Shown here: piece by piece, positions 14,381-36,329 of the stretch | Numbering within the stretch: position 1 is the first letter of the stretch | Layout of the letters: every line of letters begins with the position of its first letter | NCBI GenBank assembly: GCA_946965045.2 | Contig: OX337239.1 | Span: 310,001-374,000, forward strand | Direction of reading: 5' to 3' | Length of the DNA stretch: 64,000 nucleotides | Origin: Epithemia pelagica | Lineage: Eukaryota > Protista > Bacillariophyta | Translations under genes and position numbers: made by a program | Notes under the pieces: generated by a model | Seen by the model: the letters and a program-made list of their open reading frames with translations, nothing else | The model's database searches: none | Told to the model about the DNA's origin: nothing

Positions 14381-15622
14381 ATGTCAAAAAATTTAGAAAG
14401 CGGTCCATCGCTCCGAGAAGGGCATGATATTCAAGACATGAAAATCCACGAACAAGCGCTCTTGTCTGGACTGGAGTTCCGCTACAACAAAGACAAATCT
14501 GAGGAACCCATTTGGAGTGCATCCACTTTGCCTCCATGGCGGGGACGGAGTCGGATCCACCACGCTTCGGTTGTTGTGCATCATCCAGCCTCGAAACACG
14601 ACGAGAAGGTTGTGGTGATCAGCGGAGGAACTGTGACGGAAATTTGCCTTCCAGCAGATTCGGTGATTCTATTATATGATGACCGTAACAAGTGGCAACA
14701 AGGACCCCCTATGCGAGAAATACGGAGTGGGCATGCTTCGGTGGTATGCAATGGCGCTGTTTACGCCATTGGCGGACGCAGCGAATCTTACTTTTATTCG
14801 ACTAACAACGGCGGTCCATCGGGCTTGGATTCGATTGAACGCATCCATGTTAGGGACTTGTTTCCGCATTCATTATCGTCTCGAAGCAGCAGCACGAATG
14901 GATGGACGATGTTGAACTGTCGTCTGTCGACGAAACGACATGGGTGTGCCGCCGCTGTTGTACATGACAGATTTATTGTGGTGGCCGGGGGGTTGAATGG
15001 ATTGAATTATTTATCATCGGTTGACATTCTCGACACGGCATGTGGAAATTCATGTATTGTCACATCTGGACCATCGTTGGAAACACGTCGAAGTTTTTTA
15101 GGAATGGCTGTGATTCGACAACGTATATATGCTGTTGGTGGGAGTAATAGATGGGATGCCCTGAGCTCAGTCGAATATCTCGAATTTGATGATTTGTTGG
15201 ATAACACAGCAAAAAGTACAGAGTCTGTGTTCCCTTTTTCCAAGTCCTGGACAATGCACAAGGAACTGAGTCTGAAGTCGCCTCGAAATCAACATGGTGT
15301 AGTCCAAGTGGGTTCCTGTCTTGTCGTTGCAGGAGGATACACCAGCGGTGTAGGTGTAGGATCACATTATGTGGTGGAAGTTTTAGATGCGGCGAAAGAC
15401 ATGTGTTGGGAGCTTCCCAACTTGAAAGAGTCGAGGACTGGCTGTAGCATGGTGTCCTTGTCGAATTGTATCGCTGTGATTGGTGGGCTTCATGCGGAAG
15501 AGCCTTGCGAAACCATCGCACTTGTGGACAAGAACAGTCGACTATTTGCTCGTTTGGTGGAAATGGGTAAGAGTCCAATGTATAGCTTGAGGAACGCCTA
15601 TGTGGAACGATACCGCAACTGA
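14381..15622 (+). CDS. Kelch-repeat beta-propeller protein 1 (no BTB), 413 aa
   Basis: Repeated GG...W...M...R..H/GC units (GAVYAIGG, FIVVAGG, IYAVGG, LVVAGG, IAVIGG); intact and intronless. Confidence 0.93.
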   Translation: MSKNLESGPSLREGHDIQDMKIHEQALLSGLEFRYNKDKSEEPIWSASTLPPWRGRSRIHHASVVVHHPASKHDEKVVVISGGTVTEICLPADSVILLYDDRNKWQQGPPMREIRSGHASVVCNGAVYAIGGRSESYFYSTNNGGPSGLDSIERIHVRDLFPHSLSSRSSSTNGWTMLNCRLSTKRHGCAAAVVHDRFIVVAGGLNGLNYLSSVDILDTACGNSCIVTSGPSLETRRSFLGMAVIRQRIYAVGGSNRWDALSSVEYLEFDDLLDNTAKSTESVFPFSKSWTMHKELSLKSPRNQHGVVQVGSCLVVAGGYTSGVGVGSHYVVEVLDAAKDMCWELPNLKESRTGCSMVSLSNCIAVIGGLHAEEPCETIALVDKNSRLFARLVEMGKSPMYSLRNAYVERYRN

Positions 15623-22389: not shown

Positions 22390-23955
22390 ATGGGCAACTC
22401 CCTCTCCAACCACCACAACAAGTTTCCCGGAGTCGTGACGGACGATGAATCCGGCTGTGTCGTCTATGGAACCTTTTTGGAACCTCGCCATGTCCACCAA
22501 TTGCATCGCATCCGTCGTGGTCGTCGTGGTCGAACCACCAAGAACAACAACAACAAGAACAACAAACCATTGAAACGATTGAGTTTCTTGTCGTGTACCT
22601 TGGGCGATTGCGAGGGCCATGTCTTTGCCACCACCTTGGCTCGGTATATTACGCGCAATCCGCAATTGGAATGGGTCTTTGTCACGGGACGCTTGCTCTT
22701 GGAGAATCCGGCCCAGGCCTGCATCGTCCTGGAAGCTCTGCACAACCTCACGGCACTCTACCGACTGTGCCTGTGTTTTGGAGGATCCTCGGCGACAGTC
22801 ACTGTGGGCCAAACACTGGGGTCCGTCATCCAGAGACACGGTACCACGCTTCAAGTGTTGCACCTCAATGCCATTTCGTGGCGCGACCATCCACAGGCCT
22901 TGCAGGCCCTGGCACACCACGGACTCCGACACGCCACGGCCTTGCATACATTGGATTTCAGTGAGTGTCGCATGACGGACCAAGGATTTCAAGCCTTTTG
23001 TCAGGGTCTCCTGGAAGAGGATGATAGTGAGGAGGAGAATGATAATGGAACGACGAACCACAACAAGAATAACAAGAATGGTCCAGCCGTTCGCCTTTGT
23101 CTTCGAACCTTGGTGTTGCGACGCAACAAGCTCACGAGTCAATCGTTGCCTTGGGTGGCCAAGCTCTTGACGTGTCTCAGTTTGGAGCACGTGAGTCTGA
23201 GTAAAACCTCCTTGTTTCACCGAGCCACTCCCCATGAGGTCGAATCGTTCGTCGACGCACTCCAACAACACTCGTGCCTCCAGACGCTGGACCTGTCCGC
23301 CTGCGACATGGACGAGACGACACTCCCCTTGGTCTTGGACGCCTTGCGATTCAACCACCGACTGACTTCCTTGGATCTCAGTGACAATCCCTTTCTCCAA
23401 ACAAAAGAAGGAACCTTGTTGAAACACTTGACGCCCGTCGTGTCGCAGTGGACGACCTTGTCGACGCTCACCGTCCAAAACCACAACCATGCCGCCGCCT
23501 GTCGAAACGACTCCTCACCAAACCCTGCAGAACAGGAACCGAGCGACTCGACTAATACGACGAGGCTGCTGTGCCAAGAATTTGTCCAGGCCCTGAGACT
23601 CAACACCAGTCTCACACGTCTGGACATGGACCCGGCCTCCAAAGCTCTGTTGGAGCAACGTCCGGACCAACAACAACAACAACACGGCAAATCCACCAGT
23701 TTGAGTCTCTGGTCGCACGTCAACAATGTGCTGCAATGCAACTTGACACGACAACGATTGGATCGTCGTCGTCCGCATGCCGACTCGATTCCACTGGCGG
23801 TCTGGCCCACGTTTTTGGAACGACTGCTGTCACGAACCGACACGAAAGGACAACAACAAGAACAACCGCATGGTCCTTCCGTGGCACTGTTGGTCCTGCA
23901 ACGACAAGTGCCCAAGATTGTGACGCTTCCTGCAACCCCAAGAACGTCGTGCTAG
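22390..23955 (+). CDS. RNI-like leucine-rich repeat protein, 521 aa
   Basis: LRRs such as LHTLDFSECRMTDQG, LRTLVLRRNKL, LQTLDLSACDM and LTSLDLSDN, plus LRLNTSLTRLDM; N-terminal MG (possible myristoylation). Confidence 0.9.
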   Translation: MGNSLSNHHNKFPGVVTDDESGCVVYGTFLEPRHVHQLHRIRRGRRGRTTKNNNNKNNKPLKRLSFLSCTLGDCEGHVFATTLARYITRNPQLEWVFVTGRLLLENPAQACIVLEALHNLTALYRLCLCFGGSSATVTVGQTLGSVIQRHGTTLQVLHLNAISWRDHPQALQALAHHGLRHATALHTLDFSECRMTDQGFQAFCQGLLEEDDSEEENDNGTTNHNKNNKNGPAVRLCLRTLVLRRNKLTSQSLPWVAKLLTCLSLEHVSLSKTSLFHRATPHEVESFVDALQQHSCLQTLDLSACDMDETTLPLVLDALRFNHRLTSLDLSDNPFLQTKEGTLLKHLTPVVSQWTTLSTLTVQNHNHAAACRNDSSPNPAEQEPSDSTNTTRLLCQEFVQALRLNTSLTRLDMDPASKALLEQRPDQQQQQHGKSTSLSLWSHVNNVLQCNLTRQRLDRRRPHADSIPLAVWPTFLERLLSRTDTKGQQQEQPHGPSVALLVLQRQVPKIVTLPATPRTSC

Positions 23956-24321
23956 ACGGAATAACCCCTGTTGGTTGTCTTTTGGTTTTGGTTTCCTGTC
24001 ACCCGATTTGCTATGTATTTTTCTCTGTATCTCCGTAAAGCTAGGCGGTGTTTCAGTAACGATTCTTGTGGTCTACATTCTCTCTAGCTCACCATGCCTC
24101 GCAATTTCGAACCGCGAGATATAGTGGAAAATCTCTCCAGGAGACTCCCTCTATTAGGGCCCAAAGTTCCAATGGCGGAACGATCAAGAAGCGTTCATAC
24201 AATACAACACCAGTTTTACTTTGAGCCTTTAACTGTAAATGGACTCCGGGACTAGATATGTAGTTTTCTTGCTACGATGCTGCTCATCCGATGCTATCTT
24301 TGGGTCCGATGCTATCTTTCC

Positions 24322-25464
24322 TTAGGTTCGGTAGATTGGAACCTTACCCAATTCCAACAAACGAGAAAATAGCTGACTATTCTTGTCCAAAAGTGAGAGG
24401 GTTTCAATAAACGGTTCTCTCTCATGAAGCCCACCAATCACAGCGATACCATTCGATAAGGAAACCATGCTACAACCATACCTCAACTCTTTCAAGTTGG
24501 GAAGCTTCCAACGCATATGTCTATCGGCATCAAAGACTTCCACAGAAAACGAACTTCCTCGGGGGGTGAATCCTCCTGCAACGACAAGACAGGAACCCAC
24601 TTGGACAACAGCATGTCGCTCTCGAGGCCTAAGATGCTCGTGGATCGTCCAGGACATGGAAGACGGGAACACAGATTCAGCACTATTCGCTGTATCGTCC
24701 AACAACTCGTCAAATTCCAGATGTTCGACTGAGCTCATGGCAAGTCCTCTATGTCTCCCACCAACAGCATATATGCGTTGACGAATCACAGCCATTCCAA
24801 AATAACTTCGAGGTTTTTCCAACGATGGTCCAGATGTGACCAAACATGAATTTCCAAGTGCCGTGTCGAGGATGTCGACCGAAGACCAATCATTATTTCC
24901 ATTGGTCCCACCTGCCACCACAATAAATCTGTCGTGTACAACAGCGGCGGCACATCCCTCTCGTTTTGTAGACAAACGGCAGTTCAACATTGTCCATCCA
25001 CTCGCGCTGCTGGTGGAAGATGAGGATGAATGCGGAAACAACTCCTCAACATTGATGCGCTCGATCGAATCCAAGCTAGAAACGTCTCTTTTTCCCCCAA
25101 TGGCGTAAACAGCGCCATTGCATACCACCGAAGCAAGGCCATTTCGGCTTTCTTGCATAGGGGGTCCTTGTTGCCACTTCGCACGATCACCACAAAATAA
25201 AATAACTGAGTTGGTTGAGGAGTAAGTTCCGTGCAAAACTCCTCCAATAATCACCACAGTCTCGTCGTGTTTCGAGACTGGATGATTCACAACAACCGAC
25301 GTGTGGTACCTCCGATTCCCTCCGAACGGTGGAGGCCAAGGGGCTGGCCTCCATTGCGGTTCTGTTTTATCCTTTTCGTCGGCAAACACCAGACCTGAAA
25401 AGAACGCTTGCTTGTGGATCTCCATTGTAACTATATTCCCTTTTCGGTGCCGTTTTTGTGACAT
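24322..25464 (-). CDS. Kelch-repeat protein 2, 380 aa
   Basis: Clear paralogue of Kelch 1. TAA at 24322-24324 precedes an in-frame 30-aa tail (GKIASDPKIASDEQH...) that Kelch 3 still encodes. Confidence 0.92.
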   Translation of the reverse strand: MSQKRHRKGNIVTMEIHKQAFFSGLVFADEKDKTEPQWRPAPWPPPFGGNRRYHTSVVVNHPVSKHDETVVIIGGVLHGTYSSTNSVILFCGDRAKWQQGPPMQESRNGLASVVCNGAVYAIGGKRDVSSLDSIERINVEELFPHSSSSSTSSASGWTMLNCRLSTKREGCAAAVVHDRFIVVAGGTNGNNDWSSVDILDTALGNSCLVTSGPSLEKPRSYFGMAVIRQRIYAVGGRHRGLAMSSVEHLEFDELLDDTANSAESVFPSSMSWTIHEHLRPRERHAVVQVGSCLVVAGGFTPRGSSFSVEVFDADRHMRWKLPNLKELRYGCSMVSLSNGIAVIGGLHEREPFIETLSLLDKNSQLFSRLLELGKVPIYRT

Positions 25465-26760: not shown

Positions 26761-26989
26761 AGTGTCTCGACAGGCACCACATCTCTTTTGCTCGCAGATG
26801 CGTATACAGAATACAGAATACGTATTACGAATACCATGTACAGAAATCATCTCCAGAAGGGCCATGATCTCGCCATGAACGTCTTTCGAGTAGTGACTCT
26901 TCGGTACGCAATTGGAATGGGTCTTTGGGACAGGTCGGTTGCTGTTGGAGAGTAGTGCTCAGACTGCCGTGATCTGGACGGTACAGATG

Positions 26990-28615
26990 ATTCGCAAAAA
27001 GAAGAGAATCGCTTGCAAGCTCGTCGAGGGCTTCTAACGAAAGCAGATTCATCATTTTTGTCAGCACATGCCTTGGACAAGGAGAATGCCCAAAGTTCAA
27101 TCGAATCGGTTCTTTCTCAGTCAATGGAAGTCTTCCGAAATTGGGACCAGACCTCCAATCTGTCAAACAATGACTTGATCTTCAATACTGTCCGAGACAA
27201 ACGAAACCTGACTTGTATCCCGCATAAGCCTCCTATGGAGAAGATCTGTACTTCGGGAGTTGTTCCGTATTTGCATCGTGTCCTACAACAACTGGATGAT
27301 TATCTACAACTGCAGTTCGAGTCAACATGGGCCCTGACAAATATGACATCATCTACCTCGAACACAGTGGTTTCCTCTGTGGCAGAGTTCCCTGGCATGG
27401 TACATGAGCTAGGGCGACTGGTTGTGTTCGGTAAAACGGCCGATTTACGCTTTTAGTCGGCGTGGTGCATTGGCAACATCGCGGCCGAATCGTCCAAATA
27501 CAGAGATGGGCTTCTCAAAATGGATTCCGTAAGAAATGGATTTGTTCAAAACATTATCAGCCCCAAGACGAAAACACTCCTTGGACACTTTAAATGGGCT
27601 CTTAGTAACATTCTTAGAGACAGTTCCCATCGCGATATCGTGGAAACAAAGTGTTTCGTACGCCCGCTGGTGAGGATCCTCGAAGAATCTTCAAGAGACA
27701 ATGTCCAGCTGAGGTTGGACGTTTGCTACTGTCTTCAATATCTTGCGGAAGGCAATGTAGAAGATGGAAGTCGCCCACAACTCCTGATTGACTTCTTCAA
27801 GGTGCTCCCTACCTTGAATAAAGTTCTCCAAGACGAAGTGACTTCAAAATGCCCGACCCCCAAGCTTCTTGTACGTCTTACTCGATGCTTCGGAATGATT
27901 GCCTCCGGAAACGCAATGCAAACAGACTTGTTATTATCCACGGGGATTCTTGACTTCATCGTTCCATTGGTACACGTCAAGAACAAGGCAGTTGTAAATG
28001 AGACAATGTGGCTACTCTCCAACATTGCCGGAGGGACGAAAGACCAGGCGGAAGCTCCGGCGAAACGGAGCCGCATTTTGAGGGAGTTCGTGAAGGCCTC
28101 CCACTCCGACAATTGGGCCACACGGAAAGAGGGTTTGTGGACCCTTTGTAATCTCCTTTCGAATAATTCTCCAACACAAACGATAGCTGTTGTAAGCGCG
28201 GGGGCGATTTTGCCGTTTTCCGCGAGTCTCCAAATATCAGAATCCGATCTGTTGATATCGATCTTGGATAGCCTATATAGGATGCTGGTCTATGATGCTA
28301 ACCAACCGAATAACAACATGCCGACTGTAATCGAGGAAGAAGGGGGACTCGATGCTATCGAAGCACTGTTGAATCATCGGAACGATCAAGTATACGAGAA
28401 AGTCCTGAAGATAATTGAAGATCATTTCGGGACTGAACCCGACTTAGCGGAAGAAGATCCCAACGCTGGTCCCAAACTTTTTCGGGCTTTCGCCCTCTGC
28501 AAAGAATTTGTTTCCTGCGGACTGTTCAGTCATTGGAGGGGTTGGAAACTCAAAGGGCGTCTGCTCAATGTCGGGCGGTGTTGTGTCTCCCTCCTGTTTC
28601 GGTCGGCTGCGATGA
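26990..28615 (+). pseudogene. Divergent importin-alpha (karyopherin alpha) copy, intronless, 5'-truncated
   Basis: Partial IBB IRKKK..NRLQARR with a frameshift. ARM motifs LQFESTWALTN, AWCIGNIAAE, ETMWLLSNIAGG, KEGLWTLCN and GGLDAIEALLNHRNDQVYEK are present. There is an in-frame TAG at 27454-27456 and a frameshift near 28472. Confidence 0.9.
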
Positions 28616-28769
28616 CGGCAATGCCAACGAACATGCCCATGGAATTTGCGGTGATAGAATCGACTCGCAACAATCAACGACAGAAATTTTGTTTGTGGAG
28701 TAGTCGTCATACATTGGTGGTGTCGCTGCAAGCGCAGTTCTGAAGTGTGTGACATCATAAACAGGTGAG

Positions 28770-28983
28770 AACTCTGAGTCTGGGGGTCTGGTAGGTAGAA
28801 CTCGGCTTCCATTCCGTGAAACTCCCGAACCGTTGCTTGGAAGTTAGTATCTGCGGGTCTTTCTCCAGTCCAAGGGTGAATGCCCGTCAATCCACCAAGC
28901 CGCGGTCTTGTCGGTGCAACGCTTACTCGCGGTGTAGGCGGTGGTGGTGGCCTCTGAGGCGGTCTCAATGGAGCTGTAGCCAT
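28770..28983 (-). pseudogene. N-terminal gag-like fragment
   Basis: ATG lies ~95 nt after the PBS. MATAP...PPPPP...PRLGGLTGIHPWTG resembles N-termini of diatom Copia polyproteins as I recall them. The 3' limit is uncertain. Confidence 0.55.
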
Positions 28984-29078
28984 GGTCGATTCCAGTCTTC
29001 CAGTTTCCTCGTTTCAAACTTGGTTTGATCCCGTTCTCGTCGTCGTTGTATCAGCAATGCTCTTACAACTCGCTACTT

Positions 29079-29090
29079 GGGCTCACAACC
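29079..29090 (-). other. Primer-binding site GGTTGTGAGCCC (copia-type half-tRNA-iMet PBS)
   Basis: Immediately follows the LTR terminal CA; 10/12 match to the copia PBS GGTTATGGGCCC as I recall it. Confidence 0.75.
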
Positions 29091-29314
29091 TGCCGTGATC
29101 TGAACGGTACAGATGCAATGGATGTTGTACGCAACAGAGACGATACTCTGATATGGTCAACAAGCAGCAAGGAAGATGTTGGAAGAGATGCAATACAACA
29201 ATCAAACAGTTCGAAATTATGATTCGGGACAAGAGGGGAGAGATTTTATCTACCTTAGTGGCTCGACTCGCTCGCTGTACAATACTACCCCAGCTATACC
29301 TCACTTCCGTGACA
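29091..29314 (-). repeat. 5' LTR, 224 bp (TGTCACGG...TCACGGCA on the minus strand)
   Basis: Bounded by the TSD on one side and the PBS on the other. Confidence 0.82.
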
Positions 29315-30280
29315 CAGACTTGCATTGTCCTCAAGGCCCTTCACAAGTTCGACATCACTGAACACTGAACCGATTGTGCCTGTGGAGGATCGTCGGCCAC
29401 CACTGCCAACGTGGGCCAAGCACTGAGTTCCGTTTCCTTGACACATTGTACCAAGCTCCAATTGTTGCATCTCAATGCCAGTTCCTGGCGGGACCATCCG
29501 CACACATTGGATCTCAGTGACTGTCGCACTACGGACCAGGGATTTCAAGCCTTTTGTCCGGGACTCCTAGAGAAGATGATGATGATGAGGGGGAGAAGAA
29601 TGGACGAACGAACCACAACAACAATGGTCCTGCAGTCTGTGTTTGCCCCTTCGAACCTTGGTGTTGCGAGGGAACAAGCTCACACGCAAATCGTTGCCAT
29701 GTGAGTCTATGTAAAACCTCCTTGTTTCACCAAGCCACTCCAAACGAGGTCGAATCGTTTGTCCACGCACTGAAAAACACACTTGCCTCCAAACGCTGGA
29801 CGTGTCATCTTGCGACATGGACAAGGCCACACTCCCCTTGGTCTTGGACGCCTTTTGCGATTCAACCACCGACTCGCTTCCATGGATCTGAGCGACAATC
29901 CCTTTCACCAAAAGGAGTACAACGAGAAGGCACTGTCGTTGAACTAATTGATGCCTGTCGGGGCACAATGGACCACCTTGTCGACGCTTACCATCCAACA
30001 AAACCACAGACATGCCTTCTGTGGACAGAACTCCCTGAACAGGGACCGACCGACTCGACTACTTACTACAAGGCTGCTGTGCCAGGAATTTGTCCTGGCT
30101 TTGCGGCTAGCTCACCTACAATCCATAGCTTTTATTGTACCTTGTCTCACCATTTCGAACCGCGAGAAAGTATCACTCAACTAGAGAAAGCAAGACTCAA
30201 GCCATACCTTTCGCAAAGTTCCACTGGCTGAACGATCAAGCATCGTAAATACAATACAACACCAGTTTTACTTTGAGCCT

Positions 30281-31492
30281 TTAACTGTATGTAGACTCTG
30301 TGACGCGATTTGCAGTTTTCTTGCTATGATGCTGCTCATCCGATGCTATCTTTGAGTTCGAAGCTATCTTCCCTCGGGCTCGGTAATCGACTGGAACCTT
30401 ACCCATTTCCAACAAACGAGCAAATAGCTGACTACTCTTGTCCACAAGTGAGAGGGTTTCACACGACTCTGTCGCACCATTCCCACCAATCACAGAGATA
30501 CCATTCGACATGGAAACCATGCTACAACCATACCTCGACTCTTTCAAGTTGGGAAGCTCCCAACACATACGTTTATCGGCATCTAGAACTTGCACAGAAT
30601 TCCAATCTTCACCGTGGGTAAATCCTCCTGCAACGACAAGACAAGAACCCACTTGAACTACAGCATGAAGCTCTCGAGGCGACTTGAGACTAAGATGCTC
30701 GTGGATCGTCCAGGACTTGGACAATGCGAACACAGATTCCGCATTATTCGCTGTATCGTCCAACAAGCTACCAAATTCCAGATATTCGACCGAGTTCGAG
30801 GGATCAATATTGATCCCACCAACAGCATAAATGCGTTGGCGAATGACAGCCATTCCAAAATACCTTCGAGGTTTTCCCAACGATGGTCCAGATGTGACAG
30901 TACATGAATTTCCACATGTCGTGTCGAGGATGTCAACCGATGATAAATCATTCAATCCATTCAATCCATTGAACCCCCCGGCCACTACAATAAATCGGTC
31001 ATGTACAACAGCGGCGGCACACCCCTCTCGTTTTGTAGACAAACGACAGTTCAACATCCTCCATCCATTCGCGTTGATGGCGGAAGATGAGGATAAATGC
31101 TGAAACAGCTCCCAAACATGGATACGTTCAATCGAATCCAAGCACGATGCGCGGTTGTACCCACCAATGGCGTAAACAGCGCCATTGCATACCACCGAAA
31201 CATGACCATTTCGGCTTTCTTGCATAGGGGGTCCTTGTTGCCACTTCGCACGATTACCACATAGTAGAATAACTGAATTTGTTGTGGAGAAAATTTCCTG
31301 CAAAACTCCTCCGATAATCACCACAGTCTCGTGGTGTTTCGAGACTGGATGAGGCACAACAACCGACGTGTGGTACCTCCGATTCCCTCCTAGCAGTGAA
31401 GGCCAAGCGGGTGGCCTCCATTGCGGTTCTGTTTTGTCCTTTTCGTCGGCAAACACCGGTCCAGACAAGAGCGCTTGTTCTTGGATCTCCAT
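30281..31492 (-). CDS. Kelch-repeat protein 3, ~403 aa
   Basis: Intact paralogue from ATG 31492 (MEIQEQALLSG...). Confidence 0.92.
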   Translation of the reverse strand: MEIQEQALLSGPVFADEKDKTEPQWRPPAWPSLLGGNRRYHTSVVVPHPVSKHHETVVIIGGVLQEIFSTTNSVILLCGNRAKWQQGPPMQESRNGHVSVVCNGAVYAIGGYNRASCLDSIERIHVWELFQHLSSSSAINANGWRMLNCRLSTKREGCAAAVVHDRFIVVAGGFNGLNGLNDLSSVDILDTTCGNSCTVTSGPSLGKPRRYFGMAVIRQRIYAVGGINIDPSNSVEYLEFGSLLDDTANNAESVFALSKSWTIHEHLSLKSPRELHAVVQVGSCLVVAGGFTHGEDWNSVQVLDADKRMCWELPNLKESRYGCSMVSMSNGISVIGGNGATESCETLSLVDKSSQLFARLLEMGKVPVDYRARGKIASNSKIASDEQHHSKKTANRVTESTYS

Positions 31493-32706
31493 ATATGGAA
31501 ATATTGCGATTTCTTTGTACAAATGACGTTCTCGGAGCGATCGACTGTTGTTTTGATGGGACGTTCTCTTTATCCAACTCTAGAGCCACCGTTAATTCTG
31601 AGTGAAAGCACAGATGTTACATCAACGAATCACATGTGTGCTGGGTGCATTTCGACAAGTGGAGCACGTTTTGAAGCGTAGGACAGCATTTTACGTGGTC
31701 ATTTCCATCTTGGTTTCCTAGCAATTTGGAGGCGAGCAATCCACGATCGTTCTTGATCGAACACATATGCTGTTTTCAAAGGTACATAATTTATATTGGC
31801 TCAACAAGTTTTGCTCAGAAGGAACGTGAACGAGCATGCCTCCAAGAGTACGTTCGTGAGAACGACAGAGGTACTGCACTCTACGCTCGATCCAAAACAA
31901 GCGACATGGAATTTATAGCGTGGCGCTCATATATTATTTGCGACCCGAAGGAATTGTTTTGTGAAAGATCTGTGAAACCCTGATGACAGAGAAGCTCTCT
32001 TGATTGGCGGTAAAACCTCGCACACCTTCTTTGTCCACTGAAGACGACAGAACTTAGTGCTCTTGAGTACCAAGGGTGAAGCATCAATTGTCTTTGATCC
32101 CTCGATTGTTGAATGAGCGACTTTTCCTTGAAATCTTCCTCCCGATTGCCCCAGACAGTTTGCAACCAGCTCGGATCCTTCCACGCTGACCAAAATGATG
32201 GAAAGTGGCCGTCTTTGGTGTTGACAGTCACGAATATTGAATGATGTCATGCGGCATCGCGATCAATGGGTCCATAAAGGATAACACATTCTTCAAGTTC
32301 TCATGATCACGTATGATCAAATAAATGGGACCAGTTGCAAGTTGATTAGTACCAGCGATGAGAATAGCAGCATCCATGTGATCCTCCTCATCGGACTACC
32401 GGTAGACGCTTCTCGGAAGTCGGGTTAATGTCCCTGTTGCAAAAGTTGTCCTATCTATCCAGCAAGATGAGCCACAGAGGAATCATTTTCCATTTATTGC
32501 GTCTTGAAAGAACCTGAAACGACACATGGGTCTCCATACCACATGGTCGATCTATTGTCAGTCGATCGCGACGAGCGACGAGATGGTTTGTCGCGCCTAG
32601 CTCGCTCCTGACGCTGACTACCTCTACTGCTCCCTCTAGTAGTAGCTAGCTAGAGAGTAGAGTACATAGCTCCTCGCTGACCGCTCTCGTCTTTTGGCAG
32701 TTCACC

Positions 32707-34926: not shown

Positions 34927-36030
34927 TCATAAGGTTGGAACTTTGCCGATATCCAACAAACTAGTAAATAGCCAACTGTTCATGTCCACGAGTGAAATCG
35001 TCTGGCACGAGCTTGTAGCGTCAAAACCTCCTATCACAACGATGCCATTCAATAAGGAAACCATGCTACAACCATGCTCCGACTCTTTCAAGTTGGGAAG
35101 CTGCCAACACATGTGTTTTGTCGCATCTAGAACTTCCACAGTAGCGTTGTTACCAGCCTTCCCTCCTGCAACAACAAGACAGGACCCCACTTGGACAACA
35201 GCAGTATGTAGTGCTGGAAACTTCAGAATTAATTCCTTGTGGATCATCCAGGACTTCGACATTGGGAACACAGATTCTGAACTATTCGCTGTATCGTCCG
35301 ACAAGTCATCAAACTCCAGATATTCGACTGAGCTCAGGGCATCCCAGCTATTGCACCCACCAACAGCATAAATGCGTTGTCGGATCACAGCCATTCCAAA
35401 ATAACTTCGAGGTTTTCCCAACGATGGTCCGGATGTAACGGTACATCCATCTCCACTTGCCGTGTCGAGGATGTCAACTGATGATAAACTATTATTTCCA
35501 CCGCATCCCCATCCCCCTGCCACCACAATAAATCTGTCATGTACAACAGCGGCGGCACACCCCTCTCGTTTTGTAGACAAACGACAGTTCAACATCCTCC
35601 ATCCATTCGCGTTGATGGCGGAAGATGAGGATAAATGCTGAAACAGCTCCCAAACATGGATACGTTCAATCGAATCCAAGCACGATGCGCCGTTGTATCC
35701 ACCAATGGCGTAAACGACGCCATCGCATACAACCGAAACATGAGCATTTCGGCTTTGTTGCATAGGGGGTCCTTGTTGCCACTCCTTGCCATCAACAGGT
35801 AAAAGAATCACCGAGTTTGTGAGCTTGACATTTTCAATGTAGCGTCCTCCTAATACAACGACAACCTCCTCGCTCTTCCTGCTTGGATGACGCACAACAA
35901 TCGATGCATGGTACCTCCGATTTCCTCCTAGCAGTGGAGGCCAAGCAGGTGGCCTCCATTGCGGTTTGGTTTTGTCCTTGTCGTCGGCAAGCACCAGACC
36001 TGAAAGTACGGCTTTTTCGATGATCTTCAT
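34927..36030 (-). CDS. Kelch-repeat protein 4, 367 aa
   Basis: Intact intronless paralogue. Confidence 0.92.
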   Translation of the reverse strand: MKIIEKAVLSGLVLADDKDKTKPQWRPPAWPPLLGGNRRYHASIVVRHPSRKSEEVVVVLGGRYIENVKLTNSVILLPVDGKEWQQGPPMQQSRNAHVSVVCDGVVYAIGGYNGASCLDSIERIHVWELFQHLSSSSAINANGWRMLNCRLSTKREGCAAAVVHDRFIVVAGGWGCGGNNSLSSVDILDTASGDGCTVTSGPSLGKPRSYFGMAVIRQRIYAVGGCNSWDALSSVEYLEFDDLSDDTANSSESVFPMSKSWMIHKELILKFPALHTAVVQVGSCLVVAGGKAGNNATVEVLDATKHMCWQLPNLKESEHGCSMVSLLNGIVVIGGFDATSSCQTISLVDMNSWLFTSLLDIGKVPTL

Positions 36031-36329
36031 TGGAGATATTTGAGTTTCTTGACGAATCAGACGATCGCAGTTTTTGTGGCATGGGAGTTACTTCAGTCTG
36101 GAACGAAACCAAGCACAAATCTCACGCCAACGAATCACATTCATTTCGTCGGTTGGAGCGTGGTTTCCTTCAGACGGGGGCGTTCCTGTGTAGAGAAGAT
36201 CATTGACGAATATCGTGTTCCCAGCCTTGTTTCGTTTTCGATCACACATCACAAAGCTGTGGAGAGACTCGAGAGGCTACTGGAGATGGCATTGAAAGAT
36301 CCACGCTCTCGCTCTTTATTCGCCATCTC

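Follow-up and report, generated by a model that had tools for sequence, protein, structure and literature searches.

How does a piece of a cellular gene come to lie, in reverse orientation, inside a retrotransposon that has lost nearly all of one of its long terminal repeats (LTRs)? This question is raised by a locus of the diatom Epithemia pelagica, situated in a 64,000-nucleotide stretch of contig OX337239.1 (positions 310,001 to 374,000 of the forward strand; assembly GCA_946965045.2), referred to here as the window. Positions 26960–29319 of the window hold the remnant of a Ty1/copia element on the minus strand, inserted in a paralogue of a leucine-rich repeat (LRR) gene, and a 1,535-bp importin-alpha-like piece on the plus strand (26990–28524) occupies part of its interior. 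An earlier note on this DNA had proposed that the importin segment replaced pol and most of the 3' LTR after integration, through repair using DNA or cDNA. Our analysis makes this the best-supported explanation, albeit not a proven one: we assign a probability of about 60% to the reading that one or more breaks after integration deleted the interior and were patched, by end-joining or templated capture, with an importin copy that was possibly a cDNA.

Results

The limits of the insertion can be read directly from the sequence. A 5-bp target-site duplication (TSD), CAGAC, stands at 26960–26964 and 29315–29319. A repeat search paired 26964–26989 with 29090–29115, a direct repeat of 26 nt (25/26 identical) that is by far the longest in the region; it reflects a 3' LTR stub at 26965–26989, which repeats the first 25 nt of the 224-bp block 29091–29314. 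At the single mismatch, a second locus described below carries the G of the stub, so that the change is a later one in the 5' LTR. The TSD, the TG...CA ends, the 224-bp LTR and the 25-nt second LTR are thus all present where the earlier note had placed them. Read along the minus strand, the order is 5' LTR (29314–29091), primer-binding site (PBS) and leader (29090–28984), gag start (28983), a patchwork of gag and pol pieces down to 28525, the importin piece in the opposite orientation, and the 25-nt end of the 3' LTR. The features are as follows, in plus-strand coordinates.

26907–26964, plus strand: left flank, a degenerate LRR-gene paralogue ending in the left CAGAC; aligns continuously to the paralogue at 22661–23591 once the insert is excised
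26965–26989, minus strand: terminal 25 nt of the 3' LTR (U5 end, ...CACGGCA-3' in the sense of the element), its sole remainder; a direct repeat, identical to the 5' LTR of the second locus
26990–28524, plus strand: importin-alpha-like coding fragment, antisense to the element; 93.6% identical to L015 8301–6757, with Pfam Arm_3 and Arm, 91% protein identity and one TAG
27454–27456, plus strand: in-frame TAG stop; CAG in the C18 gene and in the second C13 copy
28525–28698, minus strand: pol fragment, matching the N-terminal region of pol in the C7 copia (L016 7156–7330) at 83% blastn identity
28699–28983, minus strand: remnant of the gag N-terminus with ATG at 28983, shortened by internal deletions when compared with the C7 element; matches the zf-CCHC gag of that element by BLASTP (E=2e-17) and in blastn blocks
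28984–29090, minus strand: leader, with the PBS at 29077–29090 complementary to TTGGGCTCATAACC of tRNA-Met(CAT), G000:C2:5881192
29091–29314, minus strand: complete 5' LTR of 224 bp, TG...CA; 85% identical to the C7 copia LTRs, with ends in register
29315–30231, plus strand: right CAGAC (29315–29319), then the rest of the degenerate LRR paralogue; supported by the LRR alignment and by the presence of the same flank after the LTR at the second locus

The importin piece has an intact parent gene. Three importin copies of this kind occur in the genome: that of the window, one at C13:1629099–1630356 (1.29 Mb away on the same contig), and an intact gene on C18 (L015 6742–8482, corresponding to G000:C18:1546741–1548481, minus strand) with an open frame of 564 codons. 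Homology to the C18 gene begins at 26990–26994, in agreement with the importin start at 26990 given in the earlier note. From its sequence, we infer that the C18 gene is spliced from a 16-nt coding exon 1 (ATGATGGAAAAACGAA), an 82-nt GT...AG intron (L015 8466–8385) and a 1,643-nt exon 2; the two exons were read unjoined, and the open reading frame (ORF) of exon 2 alone served as search query. With the short exon 1 of this model, the gene carries the importin-beta-binding (IBB) domain, the ARM repeats and Arm_3 in one frame. The ENA model of the gene (P0001, 439 aa) begins at an internal Met and omits the IBB part. The parental gene that the earlier note had asked for therefore exists, with one recognisable intron. 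The window piece spans exon 2 from about 75 nt past the intron acceptor to 12 nt before the stop codon. Because it lies wholly in exon 2 and the only recognisable intron lies upstream, its intronless state, mentioned in the earlier note, carries no information on whether the source was RNA or DNA.

The name importin needs a qualification. The window piece, searched against Pfam as two parts on either side of the TAG, contains Arm and the importin-alpha-specific Arm_3 (E=7e-15). The C18 protein is only 31% identical to the canonical importin-alpha encoded on C6, and its best outside homologues are diatom proteins at 48–49% identity (e.g. from Epithemia and one other diatom). It is a divergent, diatom-specific paralogue of importin-alpha.

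The window piece itself is dead and decays neutrally. It starts within the IBB domain, the first part of which is missing, and has no start codon; it contains the TAG, and a 20-nt frameshifting deletion near its 3' end is common to the other C13 copy. The changes private to each C13 copy are spread evenly over the codon positions (9/7/7 and 7/4/5), whereas those separating C18 from both copies are enriched at the third position (9/7/17). The conclusion of the earlier note that this copy is dead thus stands. Its hint that a nuclear-import receptor might serve an element in need of nuclear entry finds no support in a piece that is antisense to the LTR, start-less, truncated in the IBB domain, interrupted, frameshifted and neutral. 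The piece also has no poly(A), no untranslated region (UTR) and no TSD of its own.

The two junctions between importin and element differ in their overlap. At junction 1 (26989/26990), the stub ends ...TACAGATG and the importin sequence continues ATTCGC (ATCCGC in C18), with an overlap of 0 nt; a similar heptamer, TACAAAT, lies 3 nt out of register in C18. At junction 2 (28524/28525), the importin sequence is ...GGACGGT/CATCAA, the element sequence is ...GAAGGT/TCAGTCAT, and in the chimera they are joined as ...GGACGGTTCAGTCAT; they share the 3 nt GGT, or 5/6 positions when the match is extended. Junction 1 occurs once in the 60.5-Mb genome, and junction 2 occurs twice.

The assignment to Ty1/copia rests on homology, since no more than about 80 codons of gag and 174 nt of pol survive in the window copy; what is left contains neither the copia-type reverse transcriptase (RVT_2) nor an integrase, and of the two LTRs one is reduced to 25 nt. 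A whole-genome LTR search identified the closest relative, a full-length copia on C7 (L016 3038–9399, corresponding to G000:C7:2771037–2777398). Its two LTRs, of 228 nt each, are identical and lie 6,134 bp apart; CCAAA forms its TSD, and its gag and pol ORFs are long. Its proteins comprise a zf-CCHC gag and a pol with gag_pre-integrs upstream of RVT_2, which is the Ty1/copia order, and it looks like a young insertion. The LTR, leader, first gag codons and 174-nt pol piece of the window are 83–85% identical to this element, and both ends of the 224-bp LTR coincide with those of its 228-bp counterpart. The gag-like start noticed earlier has its ATG at 28983 and its homologue in the zf-CCHC gag of this element. 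Compared with that element, the patchwork interior (28525–29090) lacks 171 nt within gag and 1,235 nt between gag and early pol. The junction of the 1,235-bp deletion sits in an imperfect repeat of 10/13 nt, and the copy therefore has a history of illegitimate deletions. The full-length master that the earlier note had hoped for was not found: DNA searches of the whole genome with the LTR and the interior returned nothing closer than 84–85% identity, namely the one C7 element and more distant C8-type copies.

The host site is consistent with an ordinary insertion. Once 26965–29319 is excised, the two flanks align without interruption to the LRR paralogue at 22390, and translation over the healed site reads ...GRLLLESSAQT/CIVLKALH..., against GRLLLENPAQACIVLEALH in the paralogue. 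The earlier claim that excision restores the LRR frame needs a correction: stop codons lie on both sides of the insertion and similarity to the paralogue starts only 57 bp upstream of the insert, showing that the host copy is a degenerate paralogue.

The second occurrence of junction 2 belongs to a longer shared segment. This locus (L014 7100 to L018, G000:C13:1629099–1634049) aligns to window positions 27167–32568. The shared segment starts in the importin piece, runs through the interior of the element and its LTR, crosses into the flank at the same boundary apart from a 5-nt deletion, and continues over the rest of the LRR copy into a Kelch gene, which is closest to the Kelch gene downstream in the window itself. 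The insertion point of the LTR is identical and more than 3 kb of LRR/Kelch flank is shared, which identifies the locus as a segmental duplicate at the DNA level and not a transposition. It is thus a copy of the already formed chimera, left-truncated within the importin piece. The two loci are 96.5–97% identical over the chimera; identity falls to 92–94% over the LTR and the LRR flank and to about 89.5% over the Kelch gene, a gradient that could possibly reflect later ectopic conversion among paralogues.

We examined whether public contigs reproduce the arrangement. The read evidence consists of short Logan contigs from one study and is not independent of the assembly. These contigs show all three importin loci and bridge junction 2 (28488–29054); across junction 1 (26894–27087), depth is present in three runs, and no single listed record was seen to span it. 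The junction check proposed in the earlier note is thus answered by a bridge at junction 2, but by depth only at junction 1. Loose ends of the Logan contigs at 26997 and 28522 read into C18, and a 79-nt skip at 28368–28448 corresponds to the second C13 copy. The ENA contig ctg1263l is 100% identical to the window over 9.2 kb; given this identity, it presumably stems from the same assembly and lends no independent support. In three runs, Logan contigs carry a variant with 'AC' inserted after window position 26982, its depth being about half that of the surroundings; it may represent a second haplotype bearing the same LTR stub.

The PBS points to the primer of the element. It is complementary to nt ~27–40 (the 5' anticodon stem and loop) of the initiator-type tRNA-Met gene of the genome, at 13/14 positions in the window, which bears out the PBS claimed earlier, and at 14/14 in the C7 element. 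The 15-mer CTTGGGCTCATAACC of the PBS occurs 62 times in the genome, compared with 0 for a control. Among 12 sampled loci none was a tRNA gene, all being PBSs of other copias, and the single tRNA-Met gene was located with a shifted search pattern after the 15-mer loci had given none. It looks as if many copia elements of this genome share a PBS for the anticodon arm of initiator tRNA-Met. Self-priming was considered for the window element and rejected, as no complement of the PBS was seen in the LTR by eye. An internal part of initiator tRNA-Met is the primer of Drosophila copia and yeast Ty5. The window copy resembles such elements in its PBS for the anticodon stem-loop region abutting the 5' LTR, its 5-bp TSD and its TG...CA ends; unlike them, it has no pol, polypurine tract (PPT) or 3' LTR.

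Tandem LRR and Kelch units lie in the window at 22390–25464 and 26907–31522, and also at 14438–15583 and 34932–36040. The Kelch family has at least 40 copies, with clusters on C13, C7, C5 and C18.

Discussion

We propose the following course of events. A Ty1/copia element would have integrated normally into the LRR-gene paralogue, generating the 5-bp duplication. One or more later DNA breaks would have removed its interior, from early pol into the 3' LTR, of which only the last 25 bp remained, and the gap would have been closed by joining in, or copying in, a 1.5-kb coding piece of the C18 importin-alpha-like gene, by chance backwards. The donor may have been a cDNA of importin mRNA, since both ends of the piece fall inside the mature coding exon. 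The product was dead from the outset: it had no pol, its 3' end was without PPT, U3 and R, and its importin piece was antisense and lacked a start. It has decayed neutrally since, and part of it, together with its right-hand flank, was duplicated at the DNA level to the site 1.29 Mb away. The data show the anatomy, the parent gene, the sequences at the junctions, the flank in common and the neutral decay; we infer both the order, integration and then replacement, and the repair pathway.

Several observations support this course. The whole chimera lies between the two intact TSD copies and retains both ends of the element, and the LRR copy aligns without a break once the insert is left out. The C18 donor is intact, and the piece is free of poly(A), UTR and TSD. 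The same copy already contains another deletion, that of 1,235 bp; its 3' end is unfit for reverse transcription, and no second insertion site exists in the genome. The capture of DNA or cDNA at breaks, with deletions, is documented (PMC2671141, PMC4423477), and cDNA capture at breaks in yeast is attributed to Teng et al. 1996 and Moore & Haber 1996 insofar as PMC2671141 cites them. The marks of such filler capture are found here: a deletion in the acceptor relative to the C7 and C8 relatives, a distant donor that is intact, microhomology that is short or absent, and an insert free of TSD and poly(A). End-joining and synthesis-dependent strand annealing (SDSA) captures typically show 2–9 nt of microhomology (PMC2671141), while template switches of reverse transcriptase have a median microsimilarity of 6 bp (PMC5131818); the overlaps of 0 and 3 nt would fit the former better than the latter median. 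Random 1,545-nt windows drawn from the local genome are free of stops in only about 7% of cases, and for this reason the pure coding-exon piece leans weakly toward an mRNA or cDNA donor.

Other observations weigh against it. No empty-site or full-length-element allele was seen in the one strain and study covered, and the order of events is reconstructed from the finished product. For repair by end-joining, 1.5 kb taken from another chromosome is a long filler. The microhomologies were scored against relatives of 84–85% identity, because the assembly holds no master of this LTR subfamily. In addition, the retained 25 nt come close to the 15–20 bp that integrase needs at each terminus (PMC5131818), which is chance under repair after integration and is explained if the chimera formed before integration.

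Such a formation before integration would have taken place during plus-strand synthesis in the virus-like particle: in early pol the growing strand would have switched from the minus-strand DNA to an importin mRNA packaged in the same particle, a step that yields the antisense orientation automatically, and would have returned to the DNA 25 nt from the end of the template. The cDNA, having kept both integrase-recognition termini, would have integrated with a normal TSD, and the mismatched duplex would have been resolved at the next replication. This account explains together why the piece is antisense, why a TSD encloses the entire chimera and why just the terminal 25 nt were retained, and the replacement of internal ORFs of LTR elements by partial mRNA is a known outcome of template switching (PMC5131818). 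It also agrees with a piece lying wholly within the mature coding exon, and the multiple jumps within gag and pol could stem from the same error-prone synthesis. To our knowledge, no antisense LTR-mediated retrocopy has been reported, and we know of no documented plus-strand switch onto cellular RNA; both points count against it. Known LTR-mediated retrocopies form in minus-strand synthesis and keep both LTRs (PMC5131818), the junctions fall short of the 6-bp median, and a single event was found in 60 Mb. We therefore regard this origin as unlikely, although sequence alone cannot separate it from break repair. If true, a plus-strand jump onto a co-packaged mRNA would give LTR elements a way to capture genes that has not been described before. 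Switching in minus-strand synthesis was also considered and was rejected, as it would need an antisense importin RNA and cannot build a 5' LTR without PPT and U3. A separate proposal concerns function and not origin, namely that the chimera was kept because antisense transcripts or small RNAs directed at the C18 paralogue arise from its LTR. The 5' LTR does point into the antisense piece, which is 93.6% identical to C18 and has been duplicated once, and gene fragments captured by transposable elements (TEs) can give cross-targeting small interfering RNAs (bioRxiv 10.1101/777037). However, no RNA run contained the region, the substitutions are even over codon positions, indels and stops accumulate, and the LTR is the most diverged part between the two copies, making such a role very improbable.

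The two remaining explanations have even less in their favor. An assembly artefact, a chimeric join of an importin paralogue to an LTR element, might be suspected because the public short contigs come from the same study and are too fragmented to bridge the whole region, and because the identical ENA contig is probably the same assembly. However, two loci that differ by 3% both have junction 2, which a single misjoin cannot produce and which strongly disfavors that explanation, and the bridging contigs, the depth over junction 1, the TSD and the unbroken LRR alignment are as expected of a real insertion; we regard an artefact as highly implausible. A mobile, non-autonomous, gene-carrying LTR family of the Bs1 type was the alternative offered in the earlier note, and the second locus does carry the same importin/element junction and the same LTR. 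It also shares the insertion point and flank, whereas junction 1 is unique, and a search for junction 2 among metagenome contigs gave no match. A PPT, U3 and R at the 3' end are needed in the normal reverse transcription cycle of LTR elements; as the chimera has none of them, it cannot be reverse-transcribed normally. Such a family is refuted in this assembly by the unique junction 1 and the shared flank, and we give it hardly any credence.

Repair of breaks after integration, the reading that we favor, is close to known systems. As in repair-mediated duplication (PMC2671141; PMC4423477), the acceptor carries a deletion, the intact donor lies on another chromosome, TSD and poly(A) are absent, microhomology is 0–3 nt, and either orientation is possible; the case differs in that the insert is long (1.5 kb) and consists of coding exon only, the acceptor is the interior of an LTR retrotransposon, of which the deletion spared the last 25 bp. 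LTR-mediated retroposition (Tan et al. 2016, PMC5131818; likewise maize Bs1, as far as it is cited there) is similar in that a partial host coding sequence replaces internal ORFs while the 5' LTR, PBS and gag start are kept. In contrast, the importin piece is antisense (importin plus, element minus), is not flanked by both LTRs, a 3' LTR with PPT, U3 and R being absent, seems to show short or no microsimilarity when judged against an 84% relative of the element, and has undergone no secondary retroposition to independent sites. The patchwork interior recalls a further process. LTR retrotransposons reportedly decay by illegitimate recombination, with internal deletions at short repeats, as described by Devos et al. 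in 2002 and Ma et al. in 2004. The 1,235-bp deletion at its 10/13-nt imperfect repeat and the smaller deletions conform to this pattern; the difference here is that one deletion was filled with foreign genic sequence.

The chimera is therefore best described as an instance of known processes, most like a repair-mediated duplication whose acceptor was a decaying copia. It shows no sign of function, and its value is that of a mechanistic footprint rather than new biology. It shows that a repeated junction between a TE and a gene need not imply a family of mobile cargo. The antisense piece and the 25-nt LTR stub together make it a test case for distinguishing post-integration break repair from template switching by reverse transcriptase. 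For diatoms, it provides a cleanly resolvable example of a gene fragment from another chromosome lodged inside a decaying retrotransposon and then spread by segmental duplication.

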